Notes under the pieces: generated by a model
What the model saw: the letters and a program-made list of their open reading frames with translations, nothing else
What the model was told of the DNA's origin: nothing
Databases searched by the model: none
Assembly (NCBI GenBank): GCA_002269645.1
Contig: NIVC01000051.1
Span: forward strand, 558,001-622,000
Direction of reading: 5' to 3'
Source: Macrostomum lignano
Taxonomy: Eukaryota
Length of the DNA stretch: 64,000 nucleotides
Position numbers and translations under genes: made by a program
Part shown: one piece after another, positions 26,621 to 63,534 of the stretch
Layout of the letters: every line of letters begins with the position of its first letter
Numbering within the stretch: the first letter of the stretch is position 1

Positions 26621-27440
26621 CAGGGGCGTCGCCTTGGATTTTATGGTGGGGAGGACAAAGCCAAGAATTCAACATATACATGTACACGATTAAATTTTGG
26701 CACTCATTTTAGCACCGCAGGCACGATCATTTTAGCTCCACCAGGTATTCCTTATAGCATCGCAGGCACTCATTTTAGCGCCGCAGGCACTTATTTTAGC
26801 GCCGCAGGCACTCACTTTAGCGCCGCTGGCACTCATGTACTCATTTCAGAACCGCAGGCACTTACTTTAGCACCACAGGCACTCATTTTAGCGCCGCAGG
26901 CACTCGTTTAAGGAGCCGCAGGCACTCATTTTAGCGCTGCAGGCACTTATTTTAGCACTGCAGGCACTCATTTTAGCGCTGCAGGCACTCATTTTAGAAC
27001 CGCATGCAGGCACTTACTTTAGCACCACAGGCACTCATTTTAGCGCTGAAGGCACTCATTTTAGTTTTAGCGTCGGAGGCACTCATTTTAGCGCCGCAAG
27101 AACTCATTTTGGCGCCAAAGGCACTCATTTTTAGCGCCGAAGGCACTCATTTTAGCGCCGAAGGCACGATCATTTTTAGCGCCGTAGGGATTATAAAAGG
27201 CGCTATATATATTTGGCGCCCTGAAGAAAAATTATTGATCACCACAACGACTCACAAGGTGGGGTGGGGGGACAAAGCATTGACATGTCCCCCCAAAGCT
27301 TTCGCCAGGGGCTAGCGGAATGGGCGGTCTCCTCCGCCTCCTCGCTGCATCCGCCGGACGCCCCCTGCAGCTATGTCAAGCCCCCAAAAGCTTTTACTGG
27401 GGGACATGTCCCCCCCTTCCCCCCGGTGGCGACGCGCCTG
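26621..27440. mobile_element. Non-autonomous hAT-like MITE with internal 21-bp array
   Basis: Ends CAGGGGCGTCGCC / GGCGACGCGCCTG. Flanks GTTAACTG and GTTAAACTG form a ~8-bp TSD. Internal CACTCATTTTAGCGCCGCAGG repeats. A sister copy lies at 56197-57215. Confidence 0.7.
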
Positions 27441-30900: not shown

Positions 30901-31518
30901 AGAGCAGCGCAGATATGTTGAATGAACATTCTCAGGAAGCCTTCGGAGACTCGTCCCACAACCAGCGATTCGCTGCGGATACTGTACCGCACAGGCACGC
31001 ACTCATAGACACACTCACGCAGGGTGTACAGCGGCCCCTTGACTCTCTAATCGTCAGGCATGTGCAGTCTCCGTCTCTGTGCCTTGGGGGAATTGGCCCT
31101 CATGGGCCAGTTGTGAATCGCGTTGTGAATTAGCATGTACAGAGACAATTTACAATGAAGACAGACCAACCTGCAGCAGGTAATAGTCAGGCCCAGTACT
31201 AGGCATCATCTCCTGCAAACCGCGCCTGCCAAGCATCAGCAATCGCTGAGACGAATACTTCAGGTAACGCATCCTGGACGGATGATCTCGCAGTTCGCAT
31301 TTGCCCAGGTAAATCAGGTGGCTACAAGCGATTCCTTCGTTAGAACCGTGCTCGTCTAAATCGGGATCGGCGTCCTCTTCGCTGCAGCAGCCGGGTTTCT
31401 TTGTGCCGCCCGAGCGTTGTACTCTACCACTGTCAGTAGTTGGTCTAGCAATGCCAGTCTTGGAGACCGGATGGCTGCTACGACAGGACGAACGGAGACT
31501 CTCGTCTGCGGACTTCAT
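27990..31518 (-). CDS. Multi-exon gene of unknown function, possibly an NHL/beta-propeller protein; boundaries uncertain
   Basis: GC-rich coding blocks at ~31518-31170, ~30830-30600, ~29030-28700 and ~28385-27990 with splice-like edges. Blade-like strings include SIAADDSSYYIYGTN, YLFVSNLDAGICVFNL and KYLAYDSKRSILFVSAS. Confidence 0.45.
28499..28605. repeat. Short 15-bp array (TGGTGCTGGCGCCCC), same family as 15286-15777 in inverted orientation
   Basis: The unit differs by one base from the reverse complement of the 15-kb array unit. Confidence 0.85.
29095..30320. repeat. 32-bp minisatellite (GACCCGAGACTTCACTGTAGACCTGACTGACT) with 26-bp variants, intronic
   Basis: Direct inspection of the tandem units. 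Confidence 0.93.
30900..31150. repeat. Dispersed intronic repeat, second copy at ~53290-53500
   Basis: Shared strings GCACGCACTCATA, GTACAGCGG and AATCGTCAGGCATGT at both loci. Confidence 0.45.
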
Positions 31519-33661
31519 ATCGACTATTTAGATTTTTGGACGAAAGAGATTTTATGAATTGCAACTAACCAACCAGGCATACAGTGGCGCTGAAGCGCTG
31601 TTGTTTGCGGGTTGAAACACTCGGGAACTATGGAAAAAAGGTAGAAGAGTATTTGCTCAATCGCCTGCAGAGGGTCTATGGTTAAAACTTAGTAGACTGT
31701 CTTATGCAAGCTTTCTGGCTTGTACCCACGGGCTCGTATCCACAAGACAACTAACTACGGGCTTTGTGTAACTAATGGAAGCAATTGAGAACTTAAGGGA
31801 CAGCTGAGGGTTATATTTATACTGGTCATAGCAGTTTAATTTGAGCATAACTAGGACTAACTTGAGTATAGAAGAGAATTCACCGTGACTGTTCCTAGTT
31901 TGTTCGAGCAAGCTGTGAATCATCTTCATAAAACTGTTAAATCAAATTCATTCTACGTAGTTTAAATTTGCGCGAAACAAATTTCAAAGGACATTGTTAA
32001 AAAACTCTCCTATACTACTGAAAAAATATAAGTAAATATACGAATTCAGAATAAAGCCCCATGGGGCTAGCTCGCATCATGTTTTGATGAATTTTGATTA
32101 GAATTTTAATCATGTCTCTATTTTTTTGAGTCATTAACTAAAATACTTTGTCCTCGTCAGCGAGGCTTCATTAATTTGAAACTTTATCCAAGATTTCCTG
32201 TCGAGGTTTAACACGGGGAGCACTAGAAAGTTCCAACTTTTATCCCCAACATGGCATTGGAGGCCCCTATATTCTCTTAAGGGATCTTTTTTGGTCAGAC
32301 CATGGGTTGGGAAACTTTTTTACTCATACCTTAAGGGCCAGATAGAGAACCCAGCGCGTGACTGCGGGGCAGAGGGAGAAAGAAAGAAGAGAGGAGGGAA
32401 TAAAGAAGAGAGAAGAGAGAAGGGAAATGAGAGGGGAGAAGGGGGAGAGGAAGAGAAGAGGAGAAAAGAGAGAAAAGGGAGAGGAGAGATTGTAGAGAGA
32501 GCTGAGAAGAGAAAACCGGATTGCTATTGTGAAATTTCAAAGGACCCCAGGGCCGGATAGAGAGGCTTTACATGCCGGAGTTGGCCGACCCCTGGTCAAG
32601 ATATAGATGGGACACAACACTCTGATTTAGAAATGACATACGGTAATTACGAGCTACATTACCAACATTGAAATTCCAGAATTCCGGAATATAAAATGCA
32701 GAATTTCAGCAGTTGTGTATCGCCAGGTACACGTAGCTGTAATTAATTATTTCAATTTAAAGTAAATCTAGATAAATAAAAACATGCCAGCAGGACAAAG
32801 TACAGTTCAGTTTTAAAAAATATTTTGGTATGATGTTTGATGATACGAGTATATTTCTTCTCGTTTAAAATACAACAGGCTTGTCTAAAAAAGTTAATTT
32901 CACTTTATATTGTTTTAATAGAAATAAAAAGTTCGCAAAAAGCTAGAAAAGCCTCTGCATCCCCGCAGCAGGGGGTCGATCTGGATAAACGTCTCTACAC
33001 AGCTCATCAATTCATCTGGATAAATGTGATAATAAATGGGGATTAATTAAAAAATAAACATCGAGACAAAACAGATCAAATTTTAATTGAAGATCACACT
33101 TGATTGAATAATTACTTTTATGACGATGGCATTTAGATCGCTTCATCACTGGGTAAGACAGGCGTAGAAATATGCAATCATAGCGGAATAAATGGTACAT
33201 CAGTCCAACAATCAGCACTTATATACTTTATGAAATTGGTCCAATACAAACGTTATACGTATCCACATAGTTCCGGCGCTAGCGTTACTACTTATTTTAC
33301 TACTGTAAGTAGCATATAAAGTATTTTATGCCGATACAGTGATATAAGAAAATCTTTCTCAATGACTTAAAAACTATTGTTAAAATAAAATTTATATAAG
33401 GGTCTGTTTTGTACGCTTGTATTGAAGAATATATTTGTCTTGAAAATAGCACCGCTTTTCTCCGAATTTAATTCTCCTTTGTTGACTTTTAATAACTTGT
33501 AATAACTGGTGCACTATACAGTAATGTGAAATAGCTGTATTACTGTACAGTAATACAGTAATATTATTTACTAGGAAAAGAATCACAAACTTGATAATCG
33601 ATGTTGAATCTCAAAGAAGACGAAAACGTTTAAAACGTAGTATATGGTTTTCAACATTACT

Positions 33662-36600
33662 TCAGGAGCTGCTAGGGAAGGGCACAGATCTTGGATTGCC
33701 GTAGAAGCACAGGTAGCAATCCTCTAGCAGGCGGTTGCCCTGTTCTGGAGGCGGTGTGTTGCCTGTTTTGTCTTGAAGATCGCGAAGCCACTCTTCAAGG
33801 CCATCGACGCGGGTCACCTCCGGGATGTTGTAGCCATCGTTGCAGCCTGGAAATTCAATCATTTATGAACTGGTTAGAATGGGGCTGGCATAGGGATCGG
33901 GATGGGGATGGAATGGGTGATAGGGATGAAATCGGGATGGATTAAGCAGAATGTGCGGACACGGGAATAAGCTAGTCTGAACTCACCGCCCTCCCTATCG
34001 GCCATGCTATCGAAGAACAGCCAGTGGTTGGGCTCGGCCCTCAAGAAGCAGACGTAGCTGGTGCAAATACAGACAACAGCCAGCAGATCCATGACTGTCT
34101 GACTTTTAACAATTTGTCCGGGTCTCTTATATTTCTCCAGGATATGCCTGGGATATTTAATCTTGATTGGCTCGTGCGTTTTTCCCTTTCTGTGATCCGC
34201 AAACGCCTTGTAGCACGGTTCGCAATAGGTGTAGTCTCGGCCGGAGTCGTGCTTGAGAAAGCACTGATGGCACTCGATAGTGGCAAAGTTGCCGCAGATG
34301 TTGCAGGCCCTGGCGGTGTCCGGCAGCAGGTTGGTGATGTTCAACTGCAGCACTGGCAGGATGCGGTGGAACATTTTATATGACTTCCCAGATCGAGGCA
34401 TCTGCAGAATCAGGCACTGCGGCGGCTCGCTAAACTGGATTAGCGACAGGTGCAGCAGGGTCTCAGTGTCCGCGATGTGCTCGCGTGCACCAGTGGACTG
34501 CGGCTGCTGCTGCTGCTGTGGGAACGCAAATGATGCTAATTGGCTCAATGGGGAGTTGCTGAGATGCCAATTGGCTCAATGGGGAGTTGCTGAGATGCCA
34601 ATTGGCTCAATGGGGAGTTGCTGAGATGCCAATTGGCTCAATGGGGAGTTGCTGAGATGCCAATTGGCTCAATGGGGAGTTGCTGAGATGCCAATTGGCT
34701 CAATGGGGAGTTGCTGAGATGCCAATTGGCTCAATGGGGAGTTGCTGAGATGCCATGGCTGATGCCATGGCCAAAGCTAAAAAACTCAAAGCTGCAAATA
34801 CCTGTTGTGTTTTTAGTTAATTGATGAATTCAATTCAGTTGGAGACACCTGGGTCTCGCTCAATATATTTATAGTCATGTGCACGTTGACAACAGTGTTG
34901 TCACATACATGTAGTCATGTGCACGATACCATAATTGAACGCACGATGCATATAATTAGGTAACTGAACAATTCTAGCCTCAAAGTTAGTCAGTTAGTTA
35001 ATACACCTAGGCCCGATGCAAAGTCACTACAATACCCCAGGCGAGATAGATTATAATTTCAAGGCACAGCGAGAGCTTTTTCAGTTTTACACATTTCAAT
35101 GCCAAGAAGCCAATAGTAATGACTAAAGAAGGCAGTTTAAATATTACTTCTATTGCAATATTTCAGCCTCCGCACCCAGGGGGTAATTAGATTGCAAGTC
35201 CTTAAGCCAATAGTCTCAGTATTAATTCAAAAGACACACCTGCTGTTGCTGCTTCTGCTGTTCGAAAGGCAAATCGGCCCGATCAAGAAACAGCTGCAGC
35301 ACATGGGAGCTCTGCCCAGTGCTCAGTTTGATGAACGGCTCATGACGGAGCACGTGGTCCAGCAGCAGGTTGATGAACTCCTCAGGATCTGCGGGTTGGG
35401 TTGAAACGACATGAGGATAAAGTAGAAGGCATGAGGGGGCTTTTGGGACAAAATTTTTCACGTCCTCCATAATCCCATTAAATCCATCCATATTATCCCC
35501 GACAGAATCAGAAAAAAGGGGGGTCGCACTTACTCCAAAAACTTCGAACATAATCCCATTAAATCCATCCATATTATCCCCGACAGAATCAGAAAAAAGG
35601 GGGGTCGCACTTACTCCAAAAACTTCGAACATAATCCCATTAAATCCATCCATATTATCCCTGACAGAATCAGAAAAAAAGAGGGAGTCGCACTCGCTCA
35701 CAAAACGTCCTCCATAATCCCATTAAATCCATCCATATTATCCCCGACAGAATCAGAAAAAAGGGGGGTCGCACTCGCTCACAAAACGTCCTCCATAATC
35801 CCATTAAATCCATCCATATTATCCCCGACAGAATCAGAAAAAAGGGGGGTCGCACTCGCTCACAAAACGTCCTCCATAATCCCATTAAATCCATCCATAT
35901 TATCCCCGACAGAATCAGAAAAAAGGGGGGTCGCACTCGCTCACAAAACGTCCTCCATAATCCCATTAAATCCATCCGTATTATCCCCGACAGAATCAGA
36001 AAAAAGGGGGGTCGCACTCGCTCACAAAACGTCCTCCATAATCCCATTAAATCCATCCGTATTATCCCCGACAGAATCAGAGCATAACAGGTGTCCTACT
36101 TGTTCCGAAAACTTCGAACATAATCCCATTATAATCCACTGACATCCACCCATAGCATCTTCGAAACAATCAGAAAATAATCTGAATTCTTCTCCCCACA
36201 TTCAATCCGCAACGTGCTACCACATCCCTAAAACTTTAAATCCCCTAACCCAGGGTCCTTACCCTTTGAAAAAAAATTAAATTTTCTCTAAAATGTTTCC
36301 AGTTGTCTCTCCAGGTTCTTATTACAAAGCGCACGAGCCTAATTACAAGAGTAAGTACCGATGCAAACTTGAATGCAGCGAGTACATGAGAAAATATTGG
36401 CCCGGCGTTGATATCAATGTCCCTAATATTAATCTAGCTCTCCAAAGACACTGGTTTCATAAGTATGGAGTAACCTACGTAAAAGATTACGACAGCTACT
36501 ATAACTTTGCAGAAATCATTAAGCAATTGTAGTTGCCAACTACAAGGTTGTACCTTGTAGAGTGTAGACGTAAGTTCTAAAAATAAAACCCATGCCATGC

Positions 36601-48600: not shown

Positions 48601-51600
48601 AAGCCTTTTGAAACTCTGTGGCTGCTTGGAAAAACTCATTGTAGGATTGTTGCTCCTTATTTATTAGCCCAGTAAATCGTTTCTCTGCTTGTGCTAGCTT
48701 TTCCAATTCAGATATCTGCTGTGTACTTTTTCGCTTCATTTCTTATTTTATTTTATTTTTAGTTAAAAAATTGACGACCCACTGACACCAGTTTTCTACC
48801 CACTGCCATTTTTTTGACAGCAAATCCTATGACACAATCAAAGCGACTCAGGTAAGAGTTCCCAGTCAGGAAAATCAGAATGAAACTAATCTTGGTCCTG
48901 GTCAAACACTGACATTTACATACAATGGATGTTCGTCTTTGGTTAGTGTGCACAGTCTTAAGAGCGGCTTCCATATGACATTTCAATTCAAGACAAAGGG
49001 TAGTGCGGATGCGGCTCGTGCTAACGTTGACAAGCATGATGCGGATGTGGCTCTGATCAGTAACTTTTGGGCGTACATGTTCAAGGAGTTTAGTGTATCG
49101 AATGGGAGCACAGAGTTGGAGCGAATCGCCAACTTTGGAATTGTCTATGACGCTCATTGTTTGATCGAGAATCCTGATTTTATTCAGTTGGGAAGTGGTG
49201 CGGGTTTTATTGCAGACGAAAAAGAAGGAGATATCAATGACAGTGGTTATAAAAATAGGAAGAAGAGATACAACTATGCATTGCAAGGTGCTGATGATGC
49301 TGCTAAGAACCCGCTGTATCGGTCTGTTGATGTATTTGTACCACTGAGATTCATGAGTGGATTCTGTAATACATTTAATCGACTGACCAGTAACTTTAGC
49401 TACACCTTTAGGATGACTAGAGATAATCGCAATAGAGTGTTGTGGACTGGGGCGGATCACACAAGGATGGAGGTGAAGCTAACCGGAATCGAGCTGTATT
49501 TGGAAGTCATTGAGCCAAAGACTGCACTAAAAGCAGACTATCTTAAGGCAATAGAGAAGGACATTGATGTTGCATACACGGCCTACATGTGTCGAGATGA
49601 GCGAAACGAAACTAGAACAAACATCCGCATTAAAGAGGTATCATGCAGCAATCCAAGGTATATTATTATTAACATGAGAAACCCAAATAGCATTATACGC
49701 TACATGCATGGAGACGTGCGGTCCATTCAGCATGAAATCAGTGATAATCTTTACCCTGCACTGCCACAAAATGGAGATTTCAGTCAGAACAAGATTAGCA
49801 AATTTTACAGCGAGTTGGTCGACTTGGCTGTGAAAGAGAACAATGGAATTGCTATCACTGCTCTTCAATATGGAACTCTATATCCGATGTTTGGCGCTGA
49901 TGTGTCTGCCAGACAAATGCCTACTGATAACAGCCCTGTGAATATCGTGACTAACATTGAGAGGACTGCCGCAACACCCGTGGACCTGTACATTATCTAT
50001 GCATTTGAGAGGAAGGTGAAGCTTAACATGATCAACAATTCATCCAGTAAAGTTTAAATTTTTTTTGGGTGAAAAAAATGGAAGCGATTGCTGAAAGACT
50101 AAATAATATTGTTTCTCACTCCAAGGAGAGCATTCCTATTACAATAACTGGGCGAATAAATGACTCAAACGGGATATTTGTTCAAAAATTAGAGCAGGCG
50201 ATTAGCCTGGATCCAGGTGCTAATTACCATGTCTATCTTAACGACTTCACTGGTTGGTCAAACGTTCCCAATGTGACGGCAGCAAATAATAAGTTTTATT
50301 ACAAATGGAAAGGTGCAGCAGCAGAACCTGTGGTATTCCCTGTGAGCACGCAAAGTGTGGATACCCACAATTACTTTCTAGAAAACGTCTTTACTAAAAG
50401 AGGCCATTTTGAGACACCTGATATGAGTAAGCCAGATAAAAAACTGTTCCCTGTCAAACTAGCCTATGATCTCACTGTAATGAGAGTGGTCATGCAAGTT
50501 CACAAAGATGCGGAGGTTGAGTTTAAAGATGACACTTGGTATAGGGAATTGGGATTCGAGAAGAAAGTTTATAAGGCAGAATCCGCGGCGCGGACCGCCA
50601 CTCAAGCGTCAGGGGCCGTTAGCATGGCCCGGGAAAACGTAAGCGGTTTGTTCTTAGCACCCAATATTGCAGACATTGTAAAGGGTTTGAATATTCTAAT
50701 CAAAAGTAATATCAGTCTTGATTGGGTATTTAAGGGAAAGCGAACGAATATTTTGTACAACATCTCTAACTCTGTTGCTGGAGGACAGATGCTGGTAGAG
50801 AAACCAAATCCAGTGAAAAGAGTTGTATTGAGTAATAAGGAGATTCACGAGATTGTGCTACAGTTTGAGACTGAAGATGGGGTGGGTGTTGATTTCAACG
50901 GTGAATAGTTTGTATTGACGTTAATCATTGAGAGAATGTGAGAAAAATTACAATTGCCTAATGATTTCTGCAAAGTTATAGTAGCTGTCGTAATCGTTAA
51001 TGACTACTCCATACTTATGAAACCAGTGTCTTTGGAGAGCTAAATTAATATTAGGGACATTGATATCAACGCCGGGCCAATATTTTCTCATGTGCTCGTT
51101 GCATTCTAGTTTGCATCGGTACATACTCTTGTAATTAGGCTCGTGCGCTTTGTAATAAAAACCTGGAGAGACAACTGGAAACATTTTTAGAGAAAATTTA
51201 ATTTTTTTTCAAAGGGTAAGGACCCTGGGTTAGGGGATTTAAAGTTTTAGGGATGTGGTAGCACGTTGCGGATTGAATGTGGGGAGAAGAATTCAGATTA
51301 TTTTCTGATTGTTTCGAAGATGCTATGGGTGGATGTCAGTGAATTATAATGGGATTATGTTCGAAGTTTTCGGAACAAGTAGGACACCTGTTATGCTCTG
51401 ATTCTGTCGGGGATAATACGGATGGATTTAATGGGATTATGGAGGACGTTTTGTGAGCGAGTGCGACCCCCCTTTTTTCTGATTCTGTCGGGGATAATAT
51501 GGATGGATTTAATGGGATTATGGAGGACGTGAAAAAATTTGTCCCAAAAGCCCCCTCATGCCTTCTACTGGATAAAAAGGTATGTCATGTTTTCTGGGGA

Positions 51601-54019
51601 TCTGGGAGAGTAGGGACTTAGTCTGGGGATCTGGGGGAGTAGGGACCTAGCCTAGTATTGGAAACAAGGCGTTAAATATTAAATCACCTTTTTCTTCGCC
51701 CATCATTCCTGGAATGATGTCGAGATCGTTAAGACATTTTCGCAGCTTCAGAACTTGCCTAGCGCTGACAAACTTATTTCTAAAAGCATTTGACAGTGGT
51801 AAAAATATATGAGAACACAAATTCAATATAAAATTGTAGGTCAGGGTAGGTGTCGCTCACCTTCTCAAACAGTTTACAATACCTTCGCGCAAAGTATTCT
51901 TGATTTCCTCATAATTATCGATGTCTTTAGCCTGACCAGGCCGCTCTAGGACGCCATCGAATGCGTCCACGGTGGCAAACATGGCGAATAGCGTTGAGTC
52001 CAGATAACAAGAGTTGTGATGTCCCTGGACACCGCGATTGCGACCGACCAAATTGTCCAAGTCTTCTAGGCGAATTCGAGGCTCAGTTGGACCCGCAATG
52101 GTTGCAAAGTCACCACTGCCAAATTGGTGAGGCAGAGCCTCGGCTCCTCTGGGACGATCGGCCTGGTTATTGGCATTTCGCACTGGCTCAATCAGGCTCA
52201 GAAAGGTGAACCACAGATCAGGCTGAACATCTGGATGCACGGCTCGCACTTGGCTAGAAGGCACGAACCCGTGGCCTCCGCGTTCAACTCCTTCGTTGTC
52301 ATCAAGAGCAACGCCAACAACCAGATCTGTTTGGTTTGGAATGAAACCGAACCACATAACCATGCCGACCTTGTCCAGGAATGTTAAATTGACATGCGAG
52401 TCAATTCGAATGCCTTTACTCTCCATCAGTGCCTGCGCCTCGTCGCGACGTGGATCAAACGAGTTGAGAGGCTGCGCAGGCGGCTGATAACTCTGACCAG
52501 CATTTGCGCGGCTCTCTACAAAATATGAACATTGCAGCATTTTTACAGCCTTGGCCTGTCAAGTAGAGCATTAATCCTTTAAATACTAGCAGAATTCAAT
52601 TTTATAGATTCAACTTACGAGATACTAGGTTTATTAATCTAAGTAATTCAATCCTAAGCAAAATCGAGGGCAACTCAACCAACCTGCCAATCTACGATCA
52701 AAGTCTTTCTCTCGCTGCAAATGGGCCTCTTCAACAATGAGACAACACTCGGGTTTGCCTTCAAACATATGACGATTGCCCAACCAACATGACGAATTGG
52801 GAACTCGATGGTCAAACTCCACGCCAGCCAGATGTTTTGGTCCGTTTGCATCCAGTCTACCCAGCCATTTGATCAGGCCCCGCCTGTACTCATTCTGTCT
52901 GGCGTCCAACTGCAGCACTACCCGATCGTCAATGTTAAGCAGCTGGTCAGCTGGGCAATCTTGAACCGGATCCAACCAGCGAGCGTCCGCTAGAATCAAT
53001 CGGCGATCGCGAGCTTCTTCTGGGCGCACCTTCAACAGTTGTCGAGTGTTGTCATCAGGCAACACGGATATTATCAATGGCTGGCCATCGTCTACTTTGC
53101 GATCGCAGCTGACAAAACCAAAATAGAGACCGTCTGGGTCTTTCGGTTTTGTCCAGCTAGGCAGAACACCTTTGAACCGAACTTCACACTTTAACGAGTT
53201 TGTCGCCTCTAAAAAAGCAAATTATGTGAGCCAGTTAAAAAAATCGGACTTTTCAAGGGCAACCAAAATGATTTCGAATAAAAAAGAACGCTATATTGTA
53301 GACGAGCACTCTGCTGACTCCTGAGCAGACACAAACTAGCGTACCAATCCTTAACGCAAGCACGCACTCATACACACGCTCACACAGGCTGTACAGCGGT
53401 TCTGTGACTTTTTAAATCGTCAGGCATGTACAGTCTGTGGCTTGGAGGTCGGCCATAATGGCTGTGAATCACACGACAATCCCAAGGCCAATATTTCGTG
53501 CCTCGAAATGAATGACTCAAACTCTGAGCGAAAAATTACCCGGTTTTCCTATTGCAAAGGAAACCTTAAGCACTTGAGACTCAGAGACACCAACTAACCT
53601 AGATTCTCAACAAAACTGGGATCGCGAACAGACACGATGCTACCAACTTGGAAGCGTTGGGCCAATTGAAAATTACTCGAAACACAAAAATCGTATCGCT
53701 TGTGTATTGGCACAGCTAGCAAAATCCGGGCTTCTTCAGCTGTTAAAGGTATTTTTTCGCCTTTATACATCTGGCAAAACAAGGATTCGAACTCCAATGA
53801 GCGACACAATGGTGCAAGTTGATTTGCACCTCCTCTGTCAGGTGCAATAAGCCACAATAAGCCAGAATCCATCTGATGTGTCCTTGCTTCTATCGGATCT
53901 TTGTTTCCAATTTTTACGGTGACAGACGTTTTGTACCGATTCATGAAACACTTAAAACTGCCGGGATTTTCTGTGTCGCTAGGCAGCTCAATCTGGCGCA
54001 CTTTTACCAAACTTTCCAT
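33662..54019 (-). CDS. CYLD: CYLD-like deubiquitinase, copy B (CAP-Gly domains plus USP domain); catalytic His codon deleted; Polinton in intron 4
   Basis: Exons 54019-53599, 53208-52684, 52515-51861, 51779-51688, 35388-35240, 34515-33987 and 33846-33662 join in frame. Motifs: GVQGHHNSCYLDSTLFAMF, EEKDPEEFINLLL, CICTS-YVCF, WLFFDSMADREG, GYNIPEV, DCYLCFY. The start codon is a candidate. Confidence 0.9.
34538..34760. repeat. 31-bp minisatellite (GTTGCTGAGATGCCAATTGGCTCAATGGGGA), ~7 copies, CYLD-B intron
   Basis: Units start at 34555, 34586, ... 34741. The same array is in the CYLD-A intron. Confidence 0.92.
35421..36534 (+). repeat. Left terminal inverted repeat (~1.11 kb) with 8 copies of an ~81-bp unit
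   Basis: GACAGAATCAG recurs at 35501, 35582, 35663, 35746 and on to ~36070. Reverse-complementary to 50946-51569. Confidence 0.92.
36293..36532 (+). CDS. 79-aa orphan ORF encoded inside the left TIR
   Basis: Open in both TIRs despite several substitutions and an in-frame indel; A-rich start context like the other element genes. Confidence 0.55.
   Translation: MFPVVSPGSYYKAHEPNYKSKYRCKLECSEYMRKYWPGVDINVPNINLALQRHWFHKYGVTYVKDYDSYYNFAEIIKQL
36698..36777 (+). promoter_or_regulatory. Heat-shock element array plus TATA-like box inside the Polinton
   Basis: Four perfect alternating nGAAn pentamers (aTTCt-aGAAt-aTTCt-aGAAc) at 36711-36730, a 22-bp palindrome TTCTAGAATTCGAATTCTAGAA at 36698-36719, and TATAATATATA at 36767-36777. 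Confidence 0.65.
36864..37796 (+). CDS. Two-exon orphan gene of the Polinton (~245 aa, charged/helical)
   Basis: Exon 36864-37138, donor CG|GTAAGA, 199-bp AT-rich intron, acceptor TTTTTAG at 37337. Exon 2 continues in phase and needs one 1-bp correction near 37408 to join ORF 37452-37796. Confidence 0.5.
38273..38764 (-). CDS. Parvovirus VP1u-type phospholipase A2 domain protein (adintovirus PLA2X-like)
   Basis: LPGYKYCGPLN calcium-loop motif and PVNELDSVCMWHDVKY catalytic HD motif; ORF is open. Confidence 0.85.
   Translation of the reverse strand: MQRSGGKLDSHGLIEKLPHPNKGWTLPGYKYCGPLNPLEIQLDKNNNPNPGHEPVNELDSVCMWHDVKYRDFPEEKNRWDKEMLRRLDNIGASSGFRESIARKLVKAVIFGKTKLGLGISAEGGCTGREGWCMGCSVAGFILCAPNEELGRLLKELGVERAIK
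38796..39820 (+). pseudogene. Retroviral-like (rve) integrase, split by a 1-bp frameshift at ~39181
   Basis: DDE triad in HQADLL, TDPGKEF and VERFN; YALTITDVASRY strand motif. Confidence 0.92.
39837..40293 (+). pseudogene. Small virion/core-like protein with LPLAALIPIIAGAVSAAGGVAGGV motif (adenovirus pX-like); two 1-bp frameshifts
   Basis: Adding one A to each of the A-runs at 39928-39932 and 40000-40003 gives a continuous ~150-aa frame. Missed by the ORF track. Confidence 0.55.
40418..44258 (+). pseudogene. Protein-primed family B DNA polymerase with N-terminal extension and EndoVII-like insert; several frameshifts and stops
   Basis: ExoI VVYADFEC, ExoII HNAKNYD, ExoIII YL.TDVFLLADVF, PolA YLDANNLYGWAM, PolB KLANNSVYGK, PolC YTDTDS, KMKDE, KSKG. 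Confidence 0.95.
44344..44742 (+). pseudogene. Adenain-like (C5) maturation cysteine protease with two frameshifts
   Basis: GSHW (His) and YYFDSYG (Asp); after the shift LQGLSSDICGELC (Gln/Cys). Confidence 0.88.
44709..45435 (-). pseudogene. Conserved Polinton/adintovirus hydrophobic hairpin protein (GasderminX-like family), one frameshift at ~45015
   Basis: FRLVEI...FFDYSNMIL, two hydrophobic segments, a basic patch and, after the shift, ISRAIED.FVSEDEFKTI. Family assignment is from memory. Confidence 0.55.
45513..46172 (-). pseudogene. Orphan coiled-coil-like protein with an in-frame TAG at 46005-46007
   Basis: ATG at 46172 is in frame with ORF 45513-45896 across a single stop. Confidence 0.5.
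46189..46987 (-). pseudogene. A32/FtsK-like genome-packaging ATPase, frameshift at ~46590
   Basis: Walker A VGSSGSGKT, Walker B LIVFDD, RGRH arginine motif, IAQ sensor. Confidence 0.93.
47030..47135. repeat. ~5 x 21-bp direct repeat (AGATGTGTCATTTTGGGACTT) upstream of the ATPase gene
   Basis: Direct inspection. Confidence 0.8.
47176..47595 (-). pseudogene. Small virion-like protein: GxG motifs, amphipathic helix, Pro-rich linker, C-terminal KKGSGFKFD
   Basis: ATG at 47595 and the final stop at 47176 are in the same frame; two internal stops fall in a short-repeat region with apparent compensating indels. Confidence 0.5.
47612..48739 (-). CDS. 375-aa Q/P-rich Polinton protein with a conserved-looking C-terminal helical motif
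   Basis: Open ORF. C-terminal GKGISEIYKRVAVLLGATKTG...EFVNILDKML resembles the RL.LL.AS..AG...E...IL..L motif common in Polinton proteins. Confidence 0.65.
   Translation of the reverse strand: MKRKSTQQISELEKLAQAEKRFTGLINKEQQSYNEFFQAATEFQKALGKIPEAPQIQPQPQTRPQPQQSQPQQQQLKVTDNIFGPVERVEHDGKYVFGISMWRKNIYNEPVEYYIDINKKHISVVKGSETKSIPFTETLLNFMTKNQERISDKQLKNYKDLVTFSLARDIEILKVPEVLKHMYDSGVNLTRFKKYKHFKQWFDLPDQAEVIKYLEQQQQQQQPQPQQQHFTEVLRQMKNADPTQVAKYKNDHPDAWQHLEQHSPDRMNRIKQRVFTPQQRQAPHDSSISGSEQSFASPPQQLQAQPTPQPQDQPPSTGKGISEIYKRVAVLLGATKTGMKDENRKEFVNILDKMLERKYIDKRARELLLSRFNKK
48771..50057 (+). CDS. Double jelly-roll major capsid protein; 5' end damaged (start and one T-run)
   Basis: NFWAYMFKEFSVSNGSTELE, VPLRFMSGF, LYP, YPMFGADVS, alternating beta-strand pattern, and position next to the penton gene. 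Confidence 0.82.
50078..50941 (+). CDS. Minor capsid protein (penton); premature TAG at 50906-50908
   Basis: AISLD...YHVYLNDFTGWSNVPNV...NNKFYY and IHEIVLQFETEDG..VDFNGE; the frame continues FVLTLIIERM after the stop. Confidence 0.8.
50946..51569 (-). repeat. Right terminal inverted repeat (~0.62 kb) with 2 copies of the 81-bp unit
   Basis: Reverse complement of the left TIR minus six repeat units. Confidence 0.92.
50948..51184 (-). CDS. 78-aa copy of the TIR-encoded orphan ORF
   Basis: Near-identical to 36293-36532. Confidence 0.55.
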   Translation of the reverse strand: MFPVVSPGFYYKAHEPNYKSMYRCKLECNEHMRKYWPGVDINVPNINLALQRHWFHKYGVVINDYDSYYNFAEIIRQL

Positions 54020-54079: not shown

Positions 54080-55415
54080 CTGTGGGATGGGGAGCTGTGG
54101 GATGTGGAGCTGTGGGATGGGGATCTGTGGGATGGGGATCTGTGGCATGGGGAGATGTGGGATGGGGAGATGTGGGATGGAGAGCTGTGGGATGGGGAGC
54201 TGTGGGATGGGGATCTGTGGGATGTGGAGCTGTGGGATGGGGATCTGTGGGATGGGGAGCTGTGGGATGGGGAGCTGTGGGATGGGGAGCTGTGGGATGG
54301 GGATCTGTGGCATGGGGAGATGTGGGATGGGGAGATGTGGGATGGAGAGCTGTGGGATGGGGAGCTGTGGGATGGGGATCTGTGGGATGGGGAGATGTGG
54401 GATGGGGATCTGTGGGATGGGGAGCTGTGGGATGGGGAGATGTGGGATGGGGATCTGTGGCATGGGGAGATGTGGGATGGGGAGATGTGGGATGGAGAGC
54501 TGTGGGATGGGGAGCTGTGGGATGGGGATCTGTGGGATGGGGAGATGTGGGATGGGGAGATGTGGGATGGGGAGCTGTGGGATGGGGAGATGTGGGATGG
54601 GGATCTGTGGCATGGGGAGATGTGGGATGGGGATCTGTGGAATGGAGAGCTGTGGGATGGGGAGCTGTGGGATGGGGATCTGTGGGATGGGGAGCTGTGG
54701 GATGGGGAGCTGTGGCATGGGGATCTGTGGCATGGGGAGATGTGGGATGGGGATCTGTGGCATGGGGAGATGTGGGATGGGGAGCTGTGGAATGGAGAGC
54801 TGTGGGATGGGGATCAGTGGAATGGGGAGCTGTGGGATGGAGAGCTGTGGGATGGGGAGCTGTGAGATGGGGAGATGTGGGATGGGGAGCTGTGGGATGG
54901 GGATCTGTGAGTTGGGGAGCTGTGGGATTGGAGAGCTGTGGAAAGGGGAGCTGTGGGATGGGGAGCTGTGGGATGGAGAGCTGTGGGATGGGGAGCTGTG
55001 AGATGGGGAGATGTGGGATGGAGAGCTGTGGGATGGGGATCTGTGAGTTGGGGAGCTGTGGGATGGGGAGATGTGGGATGGGGAGCTGTGGGATGGGGAT
55101 CTGTGAGTTGGGGAGCTGTGGGATTGGAGAGCTGTGGAAAGGGGAGCTGTGGGATGGGGAGCTGTGGGATGGAGAGCTGTGGGATGGGGAGCTGTGAGAT
55201 GGGGAGATGTGGGATGGAGAGCTGTGGGATGGGGATCTGTGAGTTGGGGAGCTGTGGGATTGGAGAGCTGTGGAAAGGGGATCTGTGAGATGGGGAGCTG
55301 TAGGATAGAGAGCTGTGGGATGGGGAGCTGTGGGATGGAGAGCTGTGGGGTGGGGATCTGTGAGATGGGGAGCTGTGGGATTGGAGAGCTGTGGAAAGGG
55401 GAGCTGTGGGATGGG
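54080..55415 (+). repeat. G-rich 15-bp minisatellite (TGTGGGATGGGGAGC variants)
   Basis: Long array with GGG/GGGG runs; lies between the CYLD-B start and the CYLD-A 3' flank. Confidence 0.95.
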
Positions 55416-56196
55416 AATAACTAAAATAGGCCCATTGGGACTGCAATTCAAGAGAACTTAGCGCATGACTGCGGGCCAGAGGGAAAGAGAAGAAGCAAGG
55501 GAATAAAGGAGAAGAGAGGAGAAGAAGGACGAGAGAAGGAGAGAAGAGAAAATATATTAAAAAGTGGAGAGGAAAGAAATGGGAGACGAGAGCAGAGATG
55601 AGAGATTATAGAGAAGAGAGCTGAGCGGACCGGATTGCCATTGTGAAGTTTGAAAGGAGCCGAGGGCCGGTTAGAGAGGCTCTGCAGGCCGGAGCGACCC
55701 CTCTGGTCAAGCTACAGATGGGACATGACACTTGATTTAGAAGTGAAATACAGTAATTACCAACATTTAAAATACAAAATTGCATCAGTTGTGGGTCGCC
55801 AGGTTCAGCTTGTACTAATCTGGATAAATAAAAACATGCCAAGACAAGTCAAGATACGATTCAGTTTTCAATAATATTTTGTCATAATGTTTGCTGATAC
55901 GAGTATATTTCTCGTTTAAAATATAACAGGCTTCTCTAAAAAGTTGATTTCACTTTGTTTTGTTTTTAGTACAGAATGAATTTTTTTTTGCAAAAAAGCA
56001 AGAAAAGCCTCTGCATCAGCACAGCGGGGGGTCGATCTGGATAAGCATTTGGAAACGCGAAACCGTTCTACACATTTACAGGTGTGATGATGATGATAAA
56101 TAGGGATTAAAAAAATAATAAACATCGAGACAAAACAGTTAAAACTTTCATTAAGGATCACACTCGATTGAATAATTTTTTATTGATTGACGATGA

Positions 56197-57749: not shown

Positions 57750-60700
57750 TCAGGAGCTGCTAGGGAAGGGCACAGATCTTGGATTGCCGTAGAAGCACAG
57801 GTAGCAATCCTCTAGCAGGCGGTTGCCCTGTTCTGGAGGCGGTGCGTTGCCTGTCTTGCCTTGAAGATCGCGAAGCCACTCTTCAAGGCCATCGACGCGG
57901 GTCACCTCCGGGATGTTGTAGCCATCGTTGCAGCCTGGTAAATTCAATCATTTATGAACTGGTTAGAATGGGGGGTGGCATAGGGATACATATGAAACAG
58001 AGATGGAATGGGGATGGGGATGAGTAGTAGGGGTTAGCAGAACACGGCCGACACGGCGGAGATAGGAGGCGGGGTAGTGCATTGGGATAGGAGGAGGCCG
58101 CCTATCTCTCAACATAGAGACGGTTAACACTGCAGAGATAGGAGGAGAGGCGGCCTATTTCTTTGTACTTGGGATGGTTAACACTGCAGAGATAGGAGGA
58201 GAGGCGGCCTATTTCTTTGTACTTGGGACGGTTAACACTGTAGAGATAGGAGGAGAGGCGGCCAATCTCTTTGTACTTGGGACGGTTAACACTGCAGAGA
58301 TAGGAGGAGAGGCGGCCTATCTCTTTGTACTTGGGATGGTTAACACTGCAGAGATAGGAGGAGAGGCGGCCTATCTCTTTGTACTTGGGACGGTTAACAC
58401 AGCAGAGATAGGAGGAGAGGCGGCCTATCTCTTTGAACTTGGGATGGTTAACACTGCAGAGATAGGAGGAGAGGCGGCCTATCTCTTTGAACTTGGGATG
58501 GTTAACACTGCAGAGATAGGAGGAGAGGCGGCCTATCTCTTTGAACTTGGGATGGTTAACACTGCAGAGATAGGAGGAGAGGCGGCCTATCTCTTTGTAC
58601 TGGGGACGGTTAACACTGTAGAGATAGGAGGAGAGGCGGCCTATTTCTTTGTACTTGGGATGGTTAACACTGCAGAGATAGGAGGAGAGGCGGCCTATCT
58701 CTTTGTACTTGGGATGGTTAACACTGCAGAGATAGGAGGAGAGGCGGCCTATTTCTTTGTACTGGGGATGTTCAGCACTGTAGAGATAGGGGAAGCGGCT
58801 AACTTTTGCACACAAAAAACAATTTTACTACCTGGACAAATAAGAAGGGGTGGCTGCTGCAGAGTAACTGCCTGGGGCCTGGATTGGCCTGGATTTAGCT
58901 GTTTTTTCTTGCATGCACTGTACAGTGTTTACTGGCTGGTCTTTGTTGCTTTACTAAGTGTACTTACTGATAATAGATAAGTCTATTGGGTCAATTACTG
59001 GACGCCATATATTGTACCTGGAAACATTTAGCATTCATTCAACTAACCCACTCCATCTTATCTCTGCAGTGTTAACCGTCCCCAGTACAAAGAGATAGGC
59101 CGCCTCTCCTATCTCTGCAGTGTTAACCGTCCCAAGTACAAAGAGATAGGCCGTCTCTCCTCCTATCTCTACAGTATTAACCGTCCCAAGTACAAAGAGA
59201 TAGGCCGCCTCTCCGCCTATCTCTGCAGTGTTAACCATCCTAAGTACAAAGAGATAGGCCGCCTCTCCTCCTATCTCTACAGTATTAACCGTCCCAAGTA
59301 CAAAGAGATAGGCCGCCTCTCCTCCTATCTATGCAGTGTTAACCATTCCAAGTACAAAGAGATAGGCCGCCTCTCCTCCTATCTCTACAGTGTTAACCGT
59401 CCCCAGTACAAAGAGATAGGCCGCCTCTCCTCCTATCTCTGCAGTGTTAACCATCCCAAGTACAAAGAGATAGGCCGCCTCTCCTCCTATCTCTGCAGTG
59501 TTAACCATCTTTATGTTGAGAGATAGGCGGCCTCCTACTATCCCAATGCACTACCCCGCCTCATACTCGTATCTCCGCCCTGTCGCCCTGCTTACCCCTA
59601 CTACTGGGATGGAATGGGGATGGCAAGGGGATGGGAATGAAATGGGAATTGGGGATGGAATGCAAGACGATGAGAGAGAGAGGATGCTGAGGCGGGCAGC
59701 TAGTCTGAACTCACCGCCCTCCCTATCGGCCATGCTATCGAAGAACAGCCAGTGGTTGGGCTCGGCCCGCAAGAAGCAGACGTAGTGGCTGGTGCAAATA
59801 CAGACAACAGCCAGCAGATCCATGACAGTCTGACTTTCAACCACCTCTCCAGGATTCTGATATTGCTCCAGGATATGCCTAGGATATTTAATCTTGATTG
59901 GCTCGTGCGTTTTTCCCTTTCTGTGATCCGCAAACGTCTTATAGCACGGTTCGCAATAAGTGTAGTCTCGGCCGGAGTCGTGCTTGAGAAAGCACTGATG
60001 ACACTCGATGGTGGCAAAGTTGCCGCAGATGTTGCAGGCCCTGGCGGTGTCCGGCAGCAGGTTGGTGATGTTCAACTGCAGCACTGGCAGGATGCGGTGG
60101 AACATTTTATATGACTTCCCAGATCGAGGCATCTGCAGAATCAGGCACTGCGGCGGCTCGCTAAACTGGATGTTGCTCTGGATTAGCGACAGGTGCAGCA
60201 GGGTCTCAGTGTCCGCGATGTGCTCGCGTGCACCAGTGGAATGCGGCTGCTGCTGCTGCTGTGGGAACGCAAATTATACAAGCGTTGCTGTCATGTCATG
60301 GCTTAAGGATGAGTTGCTGAGATGCTAATTAGCTTTAAGAGGAGTTGCTGAGATGCTAATTGGCTTAACCACTTGTCTACGACAGAATTCCTTCCCCACA
60401 TCTCTATCTTACCAAATGGCAAGCACTGCATGCCATAGACAATTTAGATCTGCGCTGTACACTTCGAATTTCAAAACAGTTGCTTTATTATGCACAGGCA
60501 AGAAAACGCTTTCTCAACAGGAGAAGTGACATCTTTGACTGGAGAATAGTCTATGGCCAACCTAGAAAAAAAGGCAAGAGGGAGGGAATACAGGCATGAA
60601 AAGTTAACTGCAAGAATTTTTACTGGTGCCTCCTTAGCTCACCACCCCAACTTACCAAATCTACAATGCAAGCGGTCAGACAGCGACGGCAAGCAGCCAA

Positions 60701-63491
60701 GCAAGCCTTGCGAAACTTGGGCCTCGACAGCGAATCGAGCGATGAGTCGAGCGATGACTCATTTTTCACTGCCGAGAGCGAGGGAGAGGACGGTGACGAA
60801 AATCAAGAAGGCAACGATGGACCGGAGGAAGACGATCAGGGAATGATGCACGATGATTGGAGATCAGTAACTCCAGAGACTGATGCTCGAGCTAATTCCC
60901 TTCCCGAGTTCCTCGGGGCAAGCGGAGTCAATCCGGGATTCTCCGTACCTGCTGATGTTGACGACGGCTGGACAGCCATTTTCGAGCAATTTTTACCCGA
61001 TGAGTTGCTGCTTCAGATGTGCATGTGGACAAACAAGAGAGCGCAGCTGGATATTGCCAAGTTTCAAGAAGAACACGGAGACGATGAACTGCCTTACGGG
61101 CTCAGAACGTGGAAGCCCTGCACTGTTTCTGAGATGAAGAAGGTGATCGGCGTTATATTATATACCGGAGTTGTACAGAAACCGGAGGTGACGGCTTACT
61201 GGTCCACGGACCCGTTTTACTTTCATCCCTACTTTCAAAGCATGAAGATGCTTCCTCGCTCGCGGTTTCAACAAATCATGTCATGGCTGCGTTGCTATGA
61301 CTGTCTTGACTTCGACGCTGGTGATCCCTTGTGCAAGATCAGGCCGTTCCTAGACATGGTCCAGACAGTTTGCAAGAACAGCTACCTGCCCGGTCAAAGC
61401 ATTGCCGTTGATGAAGCGCTGCTGCTCTATAAAGGGAGGCTGATTTTTAAGCAGTACATGCCCAACAAGAGAGCCAAGTTTGGCATCAAATTGTACTGCC
61501 TTGCAGAGTCTTCTACAGGCTACATGTGGAACTATCTGATACATTCAACCACCATTGCGAATGAACAGTTCGGCAACGATGTGCCGCAGCTCTCAATCAG
61601 TGAGAGAGTCGTCGTAGAACTTTGTCGCGACATTCTGGACCTTGGATATCGGGTCTTTTGCGACAGTTGGTTTTCATCGGTGCGACTGGCCAAGTTCCTT
61701 CTGACCAGAGGAACAACCTTAACTGGGACCGTTCGCAAAGACCGAGGCGTTCCACCGATTCTGCGAGATATGCTCTTGCAACCACCGAGTCATTCCTTTG
61801 CCCGACATGGTGACATCCTTGCTGTGAAGCTGGTTGACAGGCGAAGCTCAGGAACAAAGACGGTCTATCTGTTGGACTCCGCTTCAACGGCTGCTAGCTC
61901 TTTGGTTAGCCGGGTACTGCGCGGTGGTGTGGAGCAGCAGCTGCTGAAGCCCAACTCGGTTTTGCAATATAATCACAACATGGGAGGTGTGGATCGGATG
62001 GATGCCGCAGCCCAGCCTTACAGCGCATGCCGCCGAACGCACAAATGGTTCGCAAAGTTGGCGGTGTTTCTGCTACAGCAGCTGGTTCGCAACTCCTGGA
62101 TTGTGTACCGACATCTAGGTGGATCCATGAGCTTTCTCAGCTACACTGAAAGGTGTGTAAAGCACTTGATTGAAAGCAGCGGAAATGGTCGATCGAGAGT
62201 TAAGCGTCAGGCTCTTCCCCGTCAGCCAGGCGACATTCATCACCGGCTGGAAAAGCTACCCGCTACCGCAGCACAAGAACGGCCTACCAAGCGTTGCCGA
62301 GTTTGTTACCAGCGCAGACTGAAAAAGCGGACCGTCTACTTCTGCCAAGGCTGTGACGGTCAGCCTGGGCTTTGCCTGGAGCCGTGCTTCTTTGAGTGGC
62401 ACTCGGCTAACTGATTGCTGGCGCTTTGCTGAAACTGTAATCGAACTGTTGCTAAAATTATTTTCATTCACTTGCATGCAGCTTCATTTGCCCTTATGTT
62501 CTCAAGATTTACCTTTGTGCATGCAATGTATGTCGTTTTCTATTTGTTTTGTGACACTCCGACGCAGTATGACAATACAAACAGTTTTTTGGCCTTGGCA
62601 TGCATAGCATTCCATTTGGTTGAGTCAGACAATGATTCTGTCTAAACTCGCTTTCCCATCGACTTCAAATCTGTCTATGGTCAATTGACAGAATGAACGA
62701 TGGCATGCACAGCATGCCACTGGTAATCATAAGGTTAAGGAGGAGTTGCTGAGATGCTATTGGCTTAAGGAGGAGTTGCTGAGATGCCATGGCTCAATGG
62801 GGAGTTGCTGAGATGCCAATTGACTCAAGGAGGAGTTGCTGAGATGCCAATTGGCTCAAGGAGGAGTTGCTGAGATGCCATGGCTCAATGGGGAGTTGCT
62901 GAGATGCCAATTGGCTCAATGGGGAGTCGCTGAGATGCCAATTGGCTCAAGGAGGAGTTGCTGAGATGCCAATTGGCTCAATGGGGAGTCGCTGAGATGC
63001 CAATTGGCTCAAGGAGGAGTTGCTGAGATGCCAATTGGCTCAATGGGGAGTTGCTGAGAAGCCAAGGCTTAAAAGTCGGGAAGCTGATACCTTAGACCGA
63101 ATAACTTATGATACCAGGGACAGCGAAGGCGTTAGCAGTTTTACTCATACATATTACAATGTCAATAATAATAATAATACAACAATAGAAGCCAGGTTTA
63201 ATATCTGTTCGATTGCTAGTTCTGTAGCAAATACTTTTTTCAATATAAACTTGAATTAAAGTAATTTAGCTGAATTATACAGATAAAAGAATAAACTCAG
63301 TCAGATTTTAATAGTCGATTTTATTTAATTCAAAAGACACACCTGCTGTTGCTGCTTCTGCTGTTCGAAAGGCAAATCGGCCCGATCAAGAAACAGCTGC
63401 AGCACATGGGAGCTCTGCCCAGTGCTCAGTTTGATGAACGGCTCGTGACGGAGCGCGTGGTCCAGCAGCAGGTTGATGAACTCCTCGGGGT
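57750..63491 (-). CDS. CYLD: CYLD-like deubiquitinase, copy A, last three exons (5' part beyond the window)
   Basis: Exons 63491-63343, 60258-59715 and 57934-57750, paralogous to copy B; retains CICTSHYVCF and FFDSMAD. Confidence 0.9.
58023..59605. mobile_element. 1,583-bp gene-less foldback element with Polinton-type termini (candidate mini-Polinton)
   Basis: Starts AGTAGTAGGGGT, ends ACCCCTACTACT. 6-bp TSD GGGATG at 58017-58022 and 59606-59611. Arms are inverted arrays of a 54-bp unit (~12 left, ~9 right) around a ~250-bp spacer. Absent from the CYLD-B intron. Confidence 0.8.
60369..62734 (+). mobile_element. piggyBac-family transposon, 2,366 bp, TTAA TSD
   Basis: TTAA at 60365-60368 and 62735-62738, CC...GG termini, splits the host 31-bp array. 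Confidence 0.9.
60666..62414 (+). CDS. Intact piggyBac transposase, 582 aa
   Basis: Acidic N-terminus; DDD triad in AVDEA, FCDSWFSS and MGGVDRMD; C-terminal Cys-rich domain CRVC...YFCQGC...LCLEPCF...H. Confidence 0.93.
   Translation: MQAVRQRRQAAKQALRNLGLDSESSDESSDDSFFTAESEGEDGDENQEGNDGPEEDDQGMMHDDWRSVTPETDARANSLPEFLGASGVNPGFSVPADVDDGWTAIFEQFLPDELLLQMCMWTNKRAQLDIAKFQEEHGDDELPYGLRTWKPCTVSEMKKVIGVILYTGVVQKPEVTAYWSTDPFYFHPYFQSMKMLPRSRFQQIMSWLRCYDCLDFDAGDPLCKIRPFLDMVQTVCKNSYLPGQSIAVDEALLLYKGRLIFKQYMPNKRAKFGIKLYCLAESSTGYMWNYLIHSTTIANEQFGNDVPQLSISERVVVELCRDILDLGYRVFCDSWFSSVRLAKFLLTRGTTLTGTVRKDRGVPPILRDMLLQPPSHSFARHGDILAVKLVDRRSSGTKTVYLLDSASTAASSLVSRVLRGGVEQQLLKPNSVLQYNHNMGGVDRMDAAAQPYSACRRTHKWFAKLAVFLLQQLVRNSWIVYRHLGGSMSFLSYTERCVKHLIESSGNGRSRVKRQALPRQPGDIHHRLEKLPATAAQERPTKRCRVCYQRRLKKRTVYFCQGCDGQPGLCLEPCFFEWHSAN
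62739..63060. repeat. 31-bp minisatellite in the CYLD-A intron (continues at 60305-60368 on the other side of the piggyBac)
   Basis: Same unit as 34538-34760, ~13 copies in total. Confidence 0.9.
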
Positions 63492-63534
63492 CTGCGGTTG
63501 GTTTGAAAATGACATGAGAATAAAAAGGTATATC

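Follow-up and report, generated by a model that had tools for sequence, protein, structure and literature searches.

A tandem CYLD copy that has lost its catalytic histidine codon in frame and may be retained as a non-catalytic paralogue

The 64,000-nt stretch of contig NIVC01000051.1 that we analysed, referred to here as the window, contains two genes for the deubiquitinase CYLD that lie head to tail, both on the minus strand. In one of them, copy B, an in-frame 3-bp deletion has removed the codon for the histidine of the catalytic Cys-His-Asp triad; the other, copy A, carries this codon. Because the triad histidine is removed by a one-codon deletion, copy B is predicted to be no longer able to work as a Cys-His-Asp protease, with no canonical cleavage of K63 or M1 ubiquitin chains. 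The single most likely reading, which we hold tentatively and at a little less than even confidence, is that copy B is a retained non-catalytic paralogue that would bind ubiquitin or CYLD partners as a trap or scaffold beside the active copy A.

Copy B is a tandem CYLD paralogue that has lost the triad histidine codon and kept its reading frame. We hypothesize that its protein would be made, would fold and would engage ubiquitin chains, CYLD partners or both with no cleavage. In this it would resemble the engineered human H871N protein, which is inactive and co-precipitates ubiquitinated substrate, and it would act as a trap, competitor or scaffold next to the active copy A. The Maverick element found in intron 4 of copy B would be a passenger. 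More specifically, copy B may be an expressed and selectively maintained 'pseudo-CYLD', a natural H871N-like trap of K63/M1 chains or of CYLD partners that tunes signalling through copy A. We regard this specific version, which would parallel FLIP(L) next to caspase-8 and would have arisen independently of a His-less CYLD-like protein in a tardigrade, as quite possible and slightly less likely than retention as such.

We favour retention because the lesions in copy B are all frame-preserving, one of them removes the exact triad residue, the other functional elements are intact, no frameshift has occurred since the Maverick was inserted, and inactive CYLD binds its substrate and has adaptor roles. 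Human CYLD carrying H871N is catalytically inactive and co-precipitates ubiquitinated RIP (PMC3049778), and CYLD has non-catalytic adaptor functions (PMC10919355). The status of copy B as a functional pseudoenzyme is unproven, and the decoy or dominant-negative role proposed in an earlier note on this DNA remains an inference.

The histidine deletion in copy B

Copy B lies entirely within the window and is divided into seven exons (Table 1). Joined unaltered, these exons form an open reading frame of 2556 nt with zero stops, and every intron has GT-AG ends. We found no frameshift, premature stop or lost splice site in these 2556 nt and 12 splice sites. Copy A is present in part: its exons 1-4, including the Cys box, lie beyond position 64000, and all coding comparisons between the copies cover exons 5-7. 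Comparison of the window with itself places the two copies in colinear blocks (32765-35421 matching 55817-63524).

The 851-residue product of copy B is colinear with the USP domain of human CYLD (phmmer, positions 2-369 of 2VHF_A, E 1.3e-74) and aligns from its N-terminal start with CYLD proteins of Macrostomum lignano. In Pfam, the joined model gave CAP_GLY at 36.6 bits (cut-off 26.5) in two stretches and UCH at 24.7 bits; it was the joined model alone that scored, with zero matches for single exons. The CAP-Gly motifs of copy B are degenerate, as they are in M. lignano CYLD. The Cys box NSCYLD occurs once in the window, in copy B, and the Asp motif FFDS is found in both copies. The zinc module of the B-box keeps all eight of its Cys/His ligands, in columns that are invariant in the six sequences aligned. 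The earlier note had described the Cys motif, the Asp motif, the CAP-Gly exons and the splicing as intact. Within the gene model of copy B itself this description holds; for the CAP-Gly region and the Cys box it has no counterpart in copy A to be compared with, as the corresponding exons fall past the end of the window.

Both copies also share a glutamine-rich insert of about 20 residues across the junction of exons 5 and 6 (B 35240-35263 and 34495-34515; A 63343-63366), which is absent in all aligned homologues, those of M. lignano included.

Where copy A has ACC AGC CAC TAC in exon 6, the aligned sequence of copy B is ACC AGC TAC (34062-34054). The lost triplet can be placed as CCA or as CAC with the same outcome for the protein, T-S-Y instead of T-S-H-Y. 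The junction at 34056/34057 and the letters around it match exactly those in the earlier note, and the context is neither a homopolymer nor a simple repeat. The same note had assigned this histidine to the CYLD triad, an assignment that agrees with our HMMER alignment: the copy A histidine corresponds to chain position 289 of 2VHF_A (His871), the Asp of FFDS to position 307 (Asp889) and the Cys of NSCYLD in copy B (Cys485 of its product) to position 19 (Cys601), the 374 residues of 2VHF_A being consistent with residues 583-956 of human CYLD. In the alignment with copy B, the human histidine is an unmatched residue between S767 and Y768 of the model. By this alignment, the residue lost from copy B is the triad histidine. 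Well under 1 % of random one-codon deletions would strike a triad residue.

The second coding deletion, of 12 bp, is likewise in frame, as the earlier note had stated and as the exon 6 alignment confirms. It takes out four residues that are Q-S-N-I in copy A. The corresponding segment of A is bordered by a 6-bp direct repeat, ATCCAG, which fits the signature of replication slippage.

To place both deletions among homologues, we used an exhaustive profile search that returned 799 homologues; 141 sequences cover the histidine column and 147 the site of the 12-bp deletion. The column holds a histidine in 138 of the 141. Among the three others, one lacks the whole His-box segment and is probably a gene-prediction gap, one is a garbled prediction and one, from a tardigrade, is genuine. 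A gap at the four-residue site was seen in none of the 147, and the change in B is no random variation. Since M. lignano CYLD and all outgroups carry the residues removed by the two deletions, both deletions are derived in B. The nearest relatives found were the M. lignano CYLD proteins, 56 % identical in the USP domain and 39 % along the entire protein. When exon 6 of copy A was used in a protein word-index search, just 8 distant matches came back, at no more than 45 % identity, and neither an exact-protein look-up nor a scan of metagenome DNA for either version of the junction gave a match.

The fold of copy B is predicted to be CYLD-like. An AlphaFold2 model of its USP domain has a mean predicted local distance difference test (pLDDT) of 90.2 and a predicted template modelling score (pTM) of 0.90, and its best structural matches in Foldseek are CYLD structures 2VHF and 3WXE-G (template modelling score 0.84-0.87). 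In the model, the histidine site is a turn that joins two strands, and the four-residue site is in a loop that follows a helix.

In the same set of homologues, two predicted proteins, P0010 and P0011 (the latter from Coryphaenoides rupestris), contain the CYLD His-box region twice, with the histidine present both times. This suggests tandem CYLD duplications, or else fused gene models, in other animals.

Retention or decay of copy B

The non-coding flanks of the two copies are about 20 % diverged (K, substitutions per site, ~0.2) and carry one indel per ~23 nt. The coding sequences differ at 3.0 % of 863 aligned nt, with two indels, both of them in frame. By the Nei-Gojobori method, 286 codons contain 12.5 synonymous and 12.5 non-synonymous differences, corresponding to a synonymous divergence (dS) of 0.069, a non-synonymous divergence (dN) of 0.019 and a ratio of 0.27. 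The substitutions form a mosaic, with one identical run of 218 nt (P = 0.012) and elsewhere 12 differences within 60 nt (P < 2e-4). A divergent 57-nt patch in exon 6 (Table 1) has 12 differing positions that cause six amino-acid changes, several of them charge-reversing. The proportion of synonymous sites that differ (pS) is 0.36 in the patch and 0.045 outside it, where dN/dS is 0.18. The patch may be a piece of the original divergence that escaped conversion, or else a surface loop that is diversifying. Taken as a whole, the pattern is best read as repeated homogenisation of the exons (gene conversion) between the copies that left one patch unconverted.

The earlier note had proposed dN/dS as a check on copy B; the ratios are those given above. 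Neutral evolution of both copies is rejected (p 0.001-0.004). A model in which B is neutral and A constrained is borderline by substitutions, with p 0.04-0.15. These counts are small (26 substitutions and 2 indels). Polarised with M. lignano, two amino-acid changes fall in B and one in A; faster protein evolution in B was considered and rejected on these numbers, which are too few for a test.

Indels are more informative about the reading frame. Multiples of 3 make up 6 of 46 flank indels, and two in-frame coding indels would be obtained by chance with P ~0.017. A neutral copy B would be expected to have gained ~4 frameshifting indels in exons 5-7 after the last homogenisation (none seen, P(0) = 0.015) and ~10 over its entire coding sequence after the Maverick insertion (none seen, P(0) = 5e-5). 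These expectations use the local indel-to-substitution ratio, taken from non-coding flanks that are AT-rich, and could be too high by a factor of 2-3. The lack of frameshifts since the Maverick insertion argues that the frame of B was maintained. Even with an expectation three times too high, the frame appears to have been kept by selection until recently. The tests cannot show selection on B continuing after the loss of the histidine.

Together with the uncertainty in the expected number of frameshifts and the borderline result for a neutral B, several observations weigh against retention. The silent-site divergence of 0.069 is far under that of the flanks (P = 9e-5). This deficit and the mosaic indicate that the exons of B were homogenised against A, so part of the integrity of B may have been copied instead of selected. 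Both deletions sit in the most A-like tracts; they may therefore be young, and the signals of selection could all predate the loss of the histidine. The in-frame length of the 12-bp deletion is possibly mechanical, given its slippage signature, and this deletion falls in a segment that is gap-free in all homologues. AlphaFold2 is insensitive to small deletions, and the model of copy B locates the lesions with no reading of how well they are tolerated. Finally, a 16-kb insertion placed 32 nt from the acceptor of exon 5 could impair splicing.

One explanation for these observations is that copy B is a nascent pseudogene, that is, a redundant copy just starting to decay, with the two deletions as its first lesions and with exons kept clean by gene conversion and earlier selection. 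We consider this quite possible and rank it below retention. Pseudogenisation is the commonest fate of tandem duplicates. Exon homogenisation is indicated at this locus, the two independent deletions hit highly conserved core positions within tracts nearly identical to A and are perhaps recent, the longer one bears the mark of slippage, and the Maverick has expanded intron 4 about 100-fold; a neutral B is not clearly excluded by the substitution tests. The first lesions of a decaying gene, however, are expected to be mostly frameshifts, stops and splice defects, and not one was found in copy B, over 2556 nt of coding sequence and 12 splice sites. Both of its indels are instead in frame, at the chance level of P ~0.017 given above, and one takes out exactly a triad residue. 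The absence of any frameshift since the Maverick insertion and the symmetry of the polarised amino-acid changes (2 versus 1) also speak against decay.

It is very improbable that the missing codon is an artefact, either an assembly or consensus error or the result of alleles mis-joined as A and B. The 3-bp gap is known here from assembled sequence alone. It lies, however, in neither a homopolymer nor a simple repeat, and an in-frame loss of 3 nt is untypical of consensus error. The two copies stand head to tail on one sequence, with indel-rich flanks, different transposons and different minisatellite lengths that put them far past allelic variation. For the same reasons (flanks ~20 % diverged, one indel per ~23 nt, different transposon insertions), we rejected the idea that the two copies represent alleles or an uncollapsed haplotype.

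Least probable of all is continued deubiquitinase activity of copy B by means of a non-canonical general base. For a long time USP53 and USP54 were wrongly annotated as inactive (PMC12037411), and USP39 and USP52, which lack triad residues, have been claimed to be active (PMC10919355). USP53 and USP54, however, possess their catalytic histidines and lack only the conserved residues before them (PMC12037411), whereas in B the histidine itself is gone and its neighbours are S and Y. The sole histidine nearby (P-N-H-W, present in both copies) sits where the chain turns from the His strand to the Asp strand and is unconserved in homologues, and the human H871N mutant is inactive (PMC3049778).

The Maverick element and other features of the window

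The earlier note had named B as the copy that carries an endogenous virus, and we located this element, of Maverick/Polinton type, in intron 4 of copy B (Table 1). Elements of this class measure 12-25 kb, have terminal inverted repeats and are flanked by a 6-bp target-site duplication (PMC8097293). Their capsid module comprises a double jelly-roll major capsid protein, a minor capsid protein, an ATPase and a cysteine protease. Like the Mavericks/Polintons described (PMC4028283, PMC8097293), the element in B is 16.1 kb long, with long terminal inverted repeats that start with AGT, a 6-bp target-site duplication, and genes or regions for a protein-primed DNA polymerase B and an rve integrase, as well as a putative A32-like ATPase and a candidate double jelly-roll capsid protein. 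It differs from them in being degraded, in its open reading frame with a phospholipase A2-like domain, and in that no protease or minor capsid protein was recognised.

In their unique parts the two arms share 96.7 % identity (arms 96.7-96.9 %), and they differ in length by the copy number of an 81-bp unit. The identity of the arms implies that the insertion is much younger than the duplication of CYLD. The polymerase gene has at least four frame changes and several in-frame stops, and all three frames are needed to match its homologues; its identity is confirmed by 317 homologues, several of them with PF03175. Judged from its interrupted polymerase, integrase and ATPase frames, the Maverick in B is degraded. 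No match to a cysteine protease or a minor capsid protein was obtained in the Maverick open reading frames scanned, and extending Pfam to E 10 on further open reading frames added nothing. We found no mention of a phospholipase A2-like cargo for Mavericks in the literature examined.

The insertion enlarged intron 4 of copy B from ~144 nt to 16.3 kb; the other introns of B measure 81-724 nt. It left the final 32 nt of intron 4 in place, with a branch-point-like CTCAT and a pyrimidine-rich stretch. That the Maverick killed copy B was considered and rejected, given these preserved nucleotides and the absence of frameshifts since the insertion.

In copy A, intron 5 carries a piggyBac-like transposon antisense to the gene, whose transposase open reading frame (60666-62414, plus strand) is uninterrupted over 582 codons (Pfam DDE_Tnp_1_7, E 3.7e-69). 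Its insertion split a 31-bp minisatellite that copy B has undivided (34532-34755). Intron 6 of copy A is filled by a 54-bp unit in two arrays that run in opposite orientation, and downstream of A there is a 21-bp array related to the one at 26699-27194. Upstream of copy B, 60 nt separate the start codon from the end of a 1.3-kb array with a 15-bp unit.

An 87-nt repeat, 83 % identical between its two occurrences, lies downstream of B (30985-31070) and in intron 1 of B (53352-53436). We considered this match as the 3' edge of the duplicated unit and rejected it: the second occurrence is within intron 1 of B, with exon 1 of B upstream of it, as for a dispersed repeat.

Table 1. Positions of the CYLD copies and of other features in the window
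Feature	Position	Strand	Remarks
CYLD copy B, whole model	33662..54019	-	7 exons, 851 codons; ATG 54019; TGA 33664-33662
Copy B exon 1	53599..54019	-	N-terminus and first half of degenerate CAP-Gly
Copy B exon 2	52684..53208	-	CAP-Gly region
Copy B exon 3	51861..52515	-	third, degenerate CAP-Gly; Cys box NSCYLD at 52015-51998
Copy B exon 4	51688..51779	-
Copy B exon 5	35240..35388	-	acceptor 32 nt from Maverick end
Copy B exon 6	33987..34515	-	B-box; His box without His; Asp of FFDS at 34017-34006
Copy B exon 7	33662..33846	-	contains stop codon
3-bp deletion site in copy B	34051..34062	-	ACC AGC TAC GTC; junction 34056/34057
12-bp deletion site in copy B	~34435-34446	-	four residues Q-S-N-I in A (A 60163-60186)
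CYLD copy A, part in window	57750..63491	-	exon 5 63343-63491; exon 6 59715-60258; exon 7 57750-57934
Copy A His box	59782..59793	-	ACC AGC CAC TAC (T-S-H-Y); catalytic His codon 59787-59785
Divergent 57-nt patch, exon 6	B 34096-34152; A 59827-59883	-	just upstream of His box; ~20 % diverged, other exon sequence ~1.7 %
Maverick/Polinton-type virus-like element, intron 4 of copy B	35421..51569		16,149 bp; terminal inverted repeats, 6-bp duplication, empty site in A, Pfam
Target-site duplication GGATAA	left 35415..35420; right 51570-51575		single GAATAA in A at ~63518-63523
Left terminal inverted repeat	35421..36534		1114 nt, with 7.7 copies of 81-bp unit
Right terminal inverted repeat	50946..51569		624 nt
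Protein-primed DNA polymerase B gene, broken	41714..44258	+	Pfam PF03175 (E 3e-4) and PF02945, both on first piece
rve-type integrase region	38796..39820	+	one apparent split between two frames; Pfam rve E 1.9e-4, partial core, below curated cut-off
A32-like packaging ATPase region	46189..46987	-	apparently split once between two frames; Pox_A32 E 2.5e-3, 17.8 bits (cut-off 22.8)
Double jelly-roll major capsid protein candidate	48939..50057	+	DJR-like_dom E 5.8e-6, 26.2 bits (cut-off 27)
Open reading frame with parvovirus-type phospholipase A2-like domain	38273..38764	-	PF08398 E 1.2e-13; H-D motif in translation
piggyBac-like transposon, intron 5 of copy A	60368..62734	+	antisense to gene; TTAA on both sides
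Minisatellites	54080-55415, 56308-57099, 58122-59506, 62737-63065, 63542-63998, 26699-27194
DNAJC3 (p58IPK)-like TPR/J-domain protein exon	22948-23700	-	best database identity 55 %
Open reading frame ending in dynamin-family GTPase P-loop	15083-16123	-

Comparison with known systems

CYLD acts as a central brake in NF-kB-type signalling, and its catalytically dead form serves as a substrate trap in the laboratory. If copy B is retained, it would provide a clean evolutionary experiment on what CYLD does besides catalysis and would add to the short list of pseudo-deubiquitinases with a USP fold. If it is merely decaying, the locus shows exon-limited homogenisation and a datable Maverick insertion into an intron, with the empty site in the sister copy, and is otherwise ordinary. 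We found no description of a natural CYLD pseudoenzyme or of a His-less CYLD in the literature searched.

Copy B shares with human CYLD, which is specific for K63 and M1 chains (2VHF, 3WXE-G), a colinear USP domain into which a B-box is inserted, matching Cys-box and Asp motifs, and N-terminal CAP-Gly motifs. It differs in its four-residue deletion, in the poly-glutamine insert that it shares with A, in its degenerate CAP-Gly motifs and in a sequence identity of ~36-45 %. The histidine that is missing is the one replaced in human H871N, but in B the loss is natural, arose by deletion of a codon and affects a lineage-specific tandem paralogue.

A candidate for a second, independent natural His-less CYLD is the CYLD-like protein of the tardigrade Paramacrobiotus metropolitanus (XP_055337670.1; P0080), the sole other case among the 141 homologues. 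Like B, it has an intact Cys box and no histidine. In contrast to B, its histidine was lost by substitution together with a small insertion, and it has a C-terminal RING-type domain; at 38 % identity it belongs to an unrelated lineage. CYLD has been duplicated and retained before, in the vertebrate 'CYLD-like' gene (PMC5381560). That duplicate is a whole paralogue family, and the homologues of that kind that we recovered keep the histidine.

Among other USP proteins, the pseudo-deubiquitinases USP39/Sad1 and USP52/PAN2 resemble copy B in keeping the USP fold with one or more canonical catalytic residues missing, and scaffold or regulatory roles have been proposed for them. They are ancient, conserved orthologous families with demonstrated cellular roles, whereas B is a young duplicate restricted to a species or lineage. 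USP53 and USP54 differ from B in that they were found to be active and keep the histidine. Outside this protease clan, FLIP(L) (PMC7586951) is, like B, a duplicated protease paralogue without catalytic competence, and it modulates the pathway of its active relatives caspase-8 and caspase-10. It offers the closest analogy in function and a model of how B might work. The function of FLIP(L) is experimentally established, whereas that of B is proposed by analogy. On present evidence, copy B is of a kind already known, a duplicated protease minus a catalytic residue.

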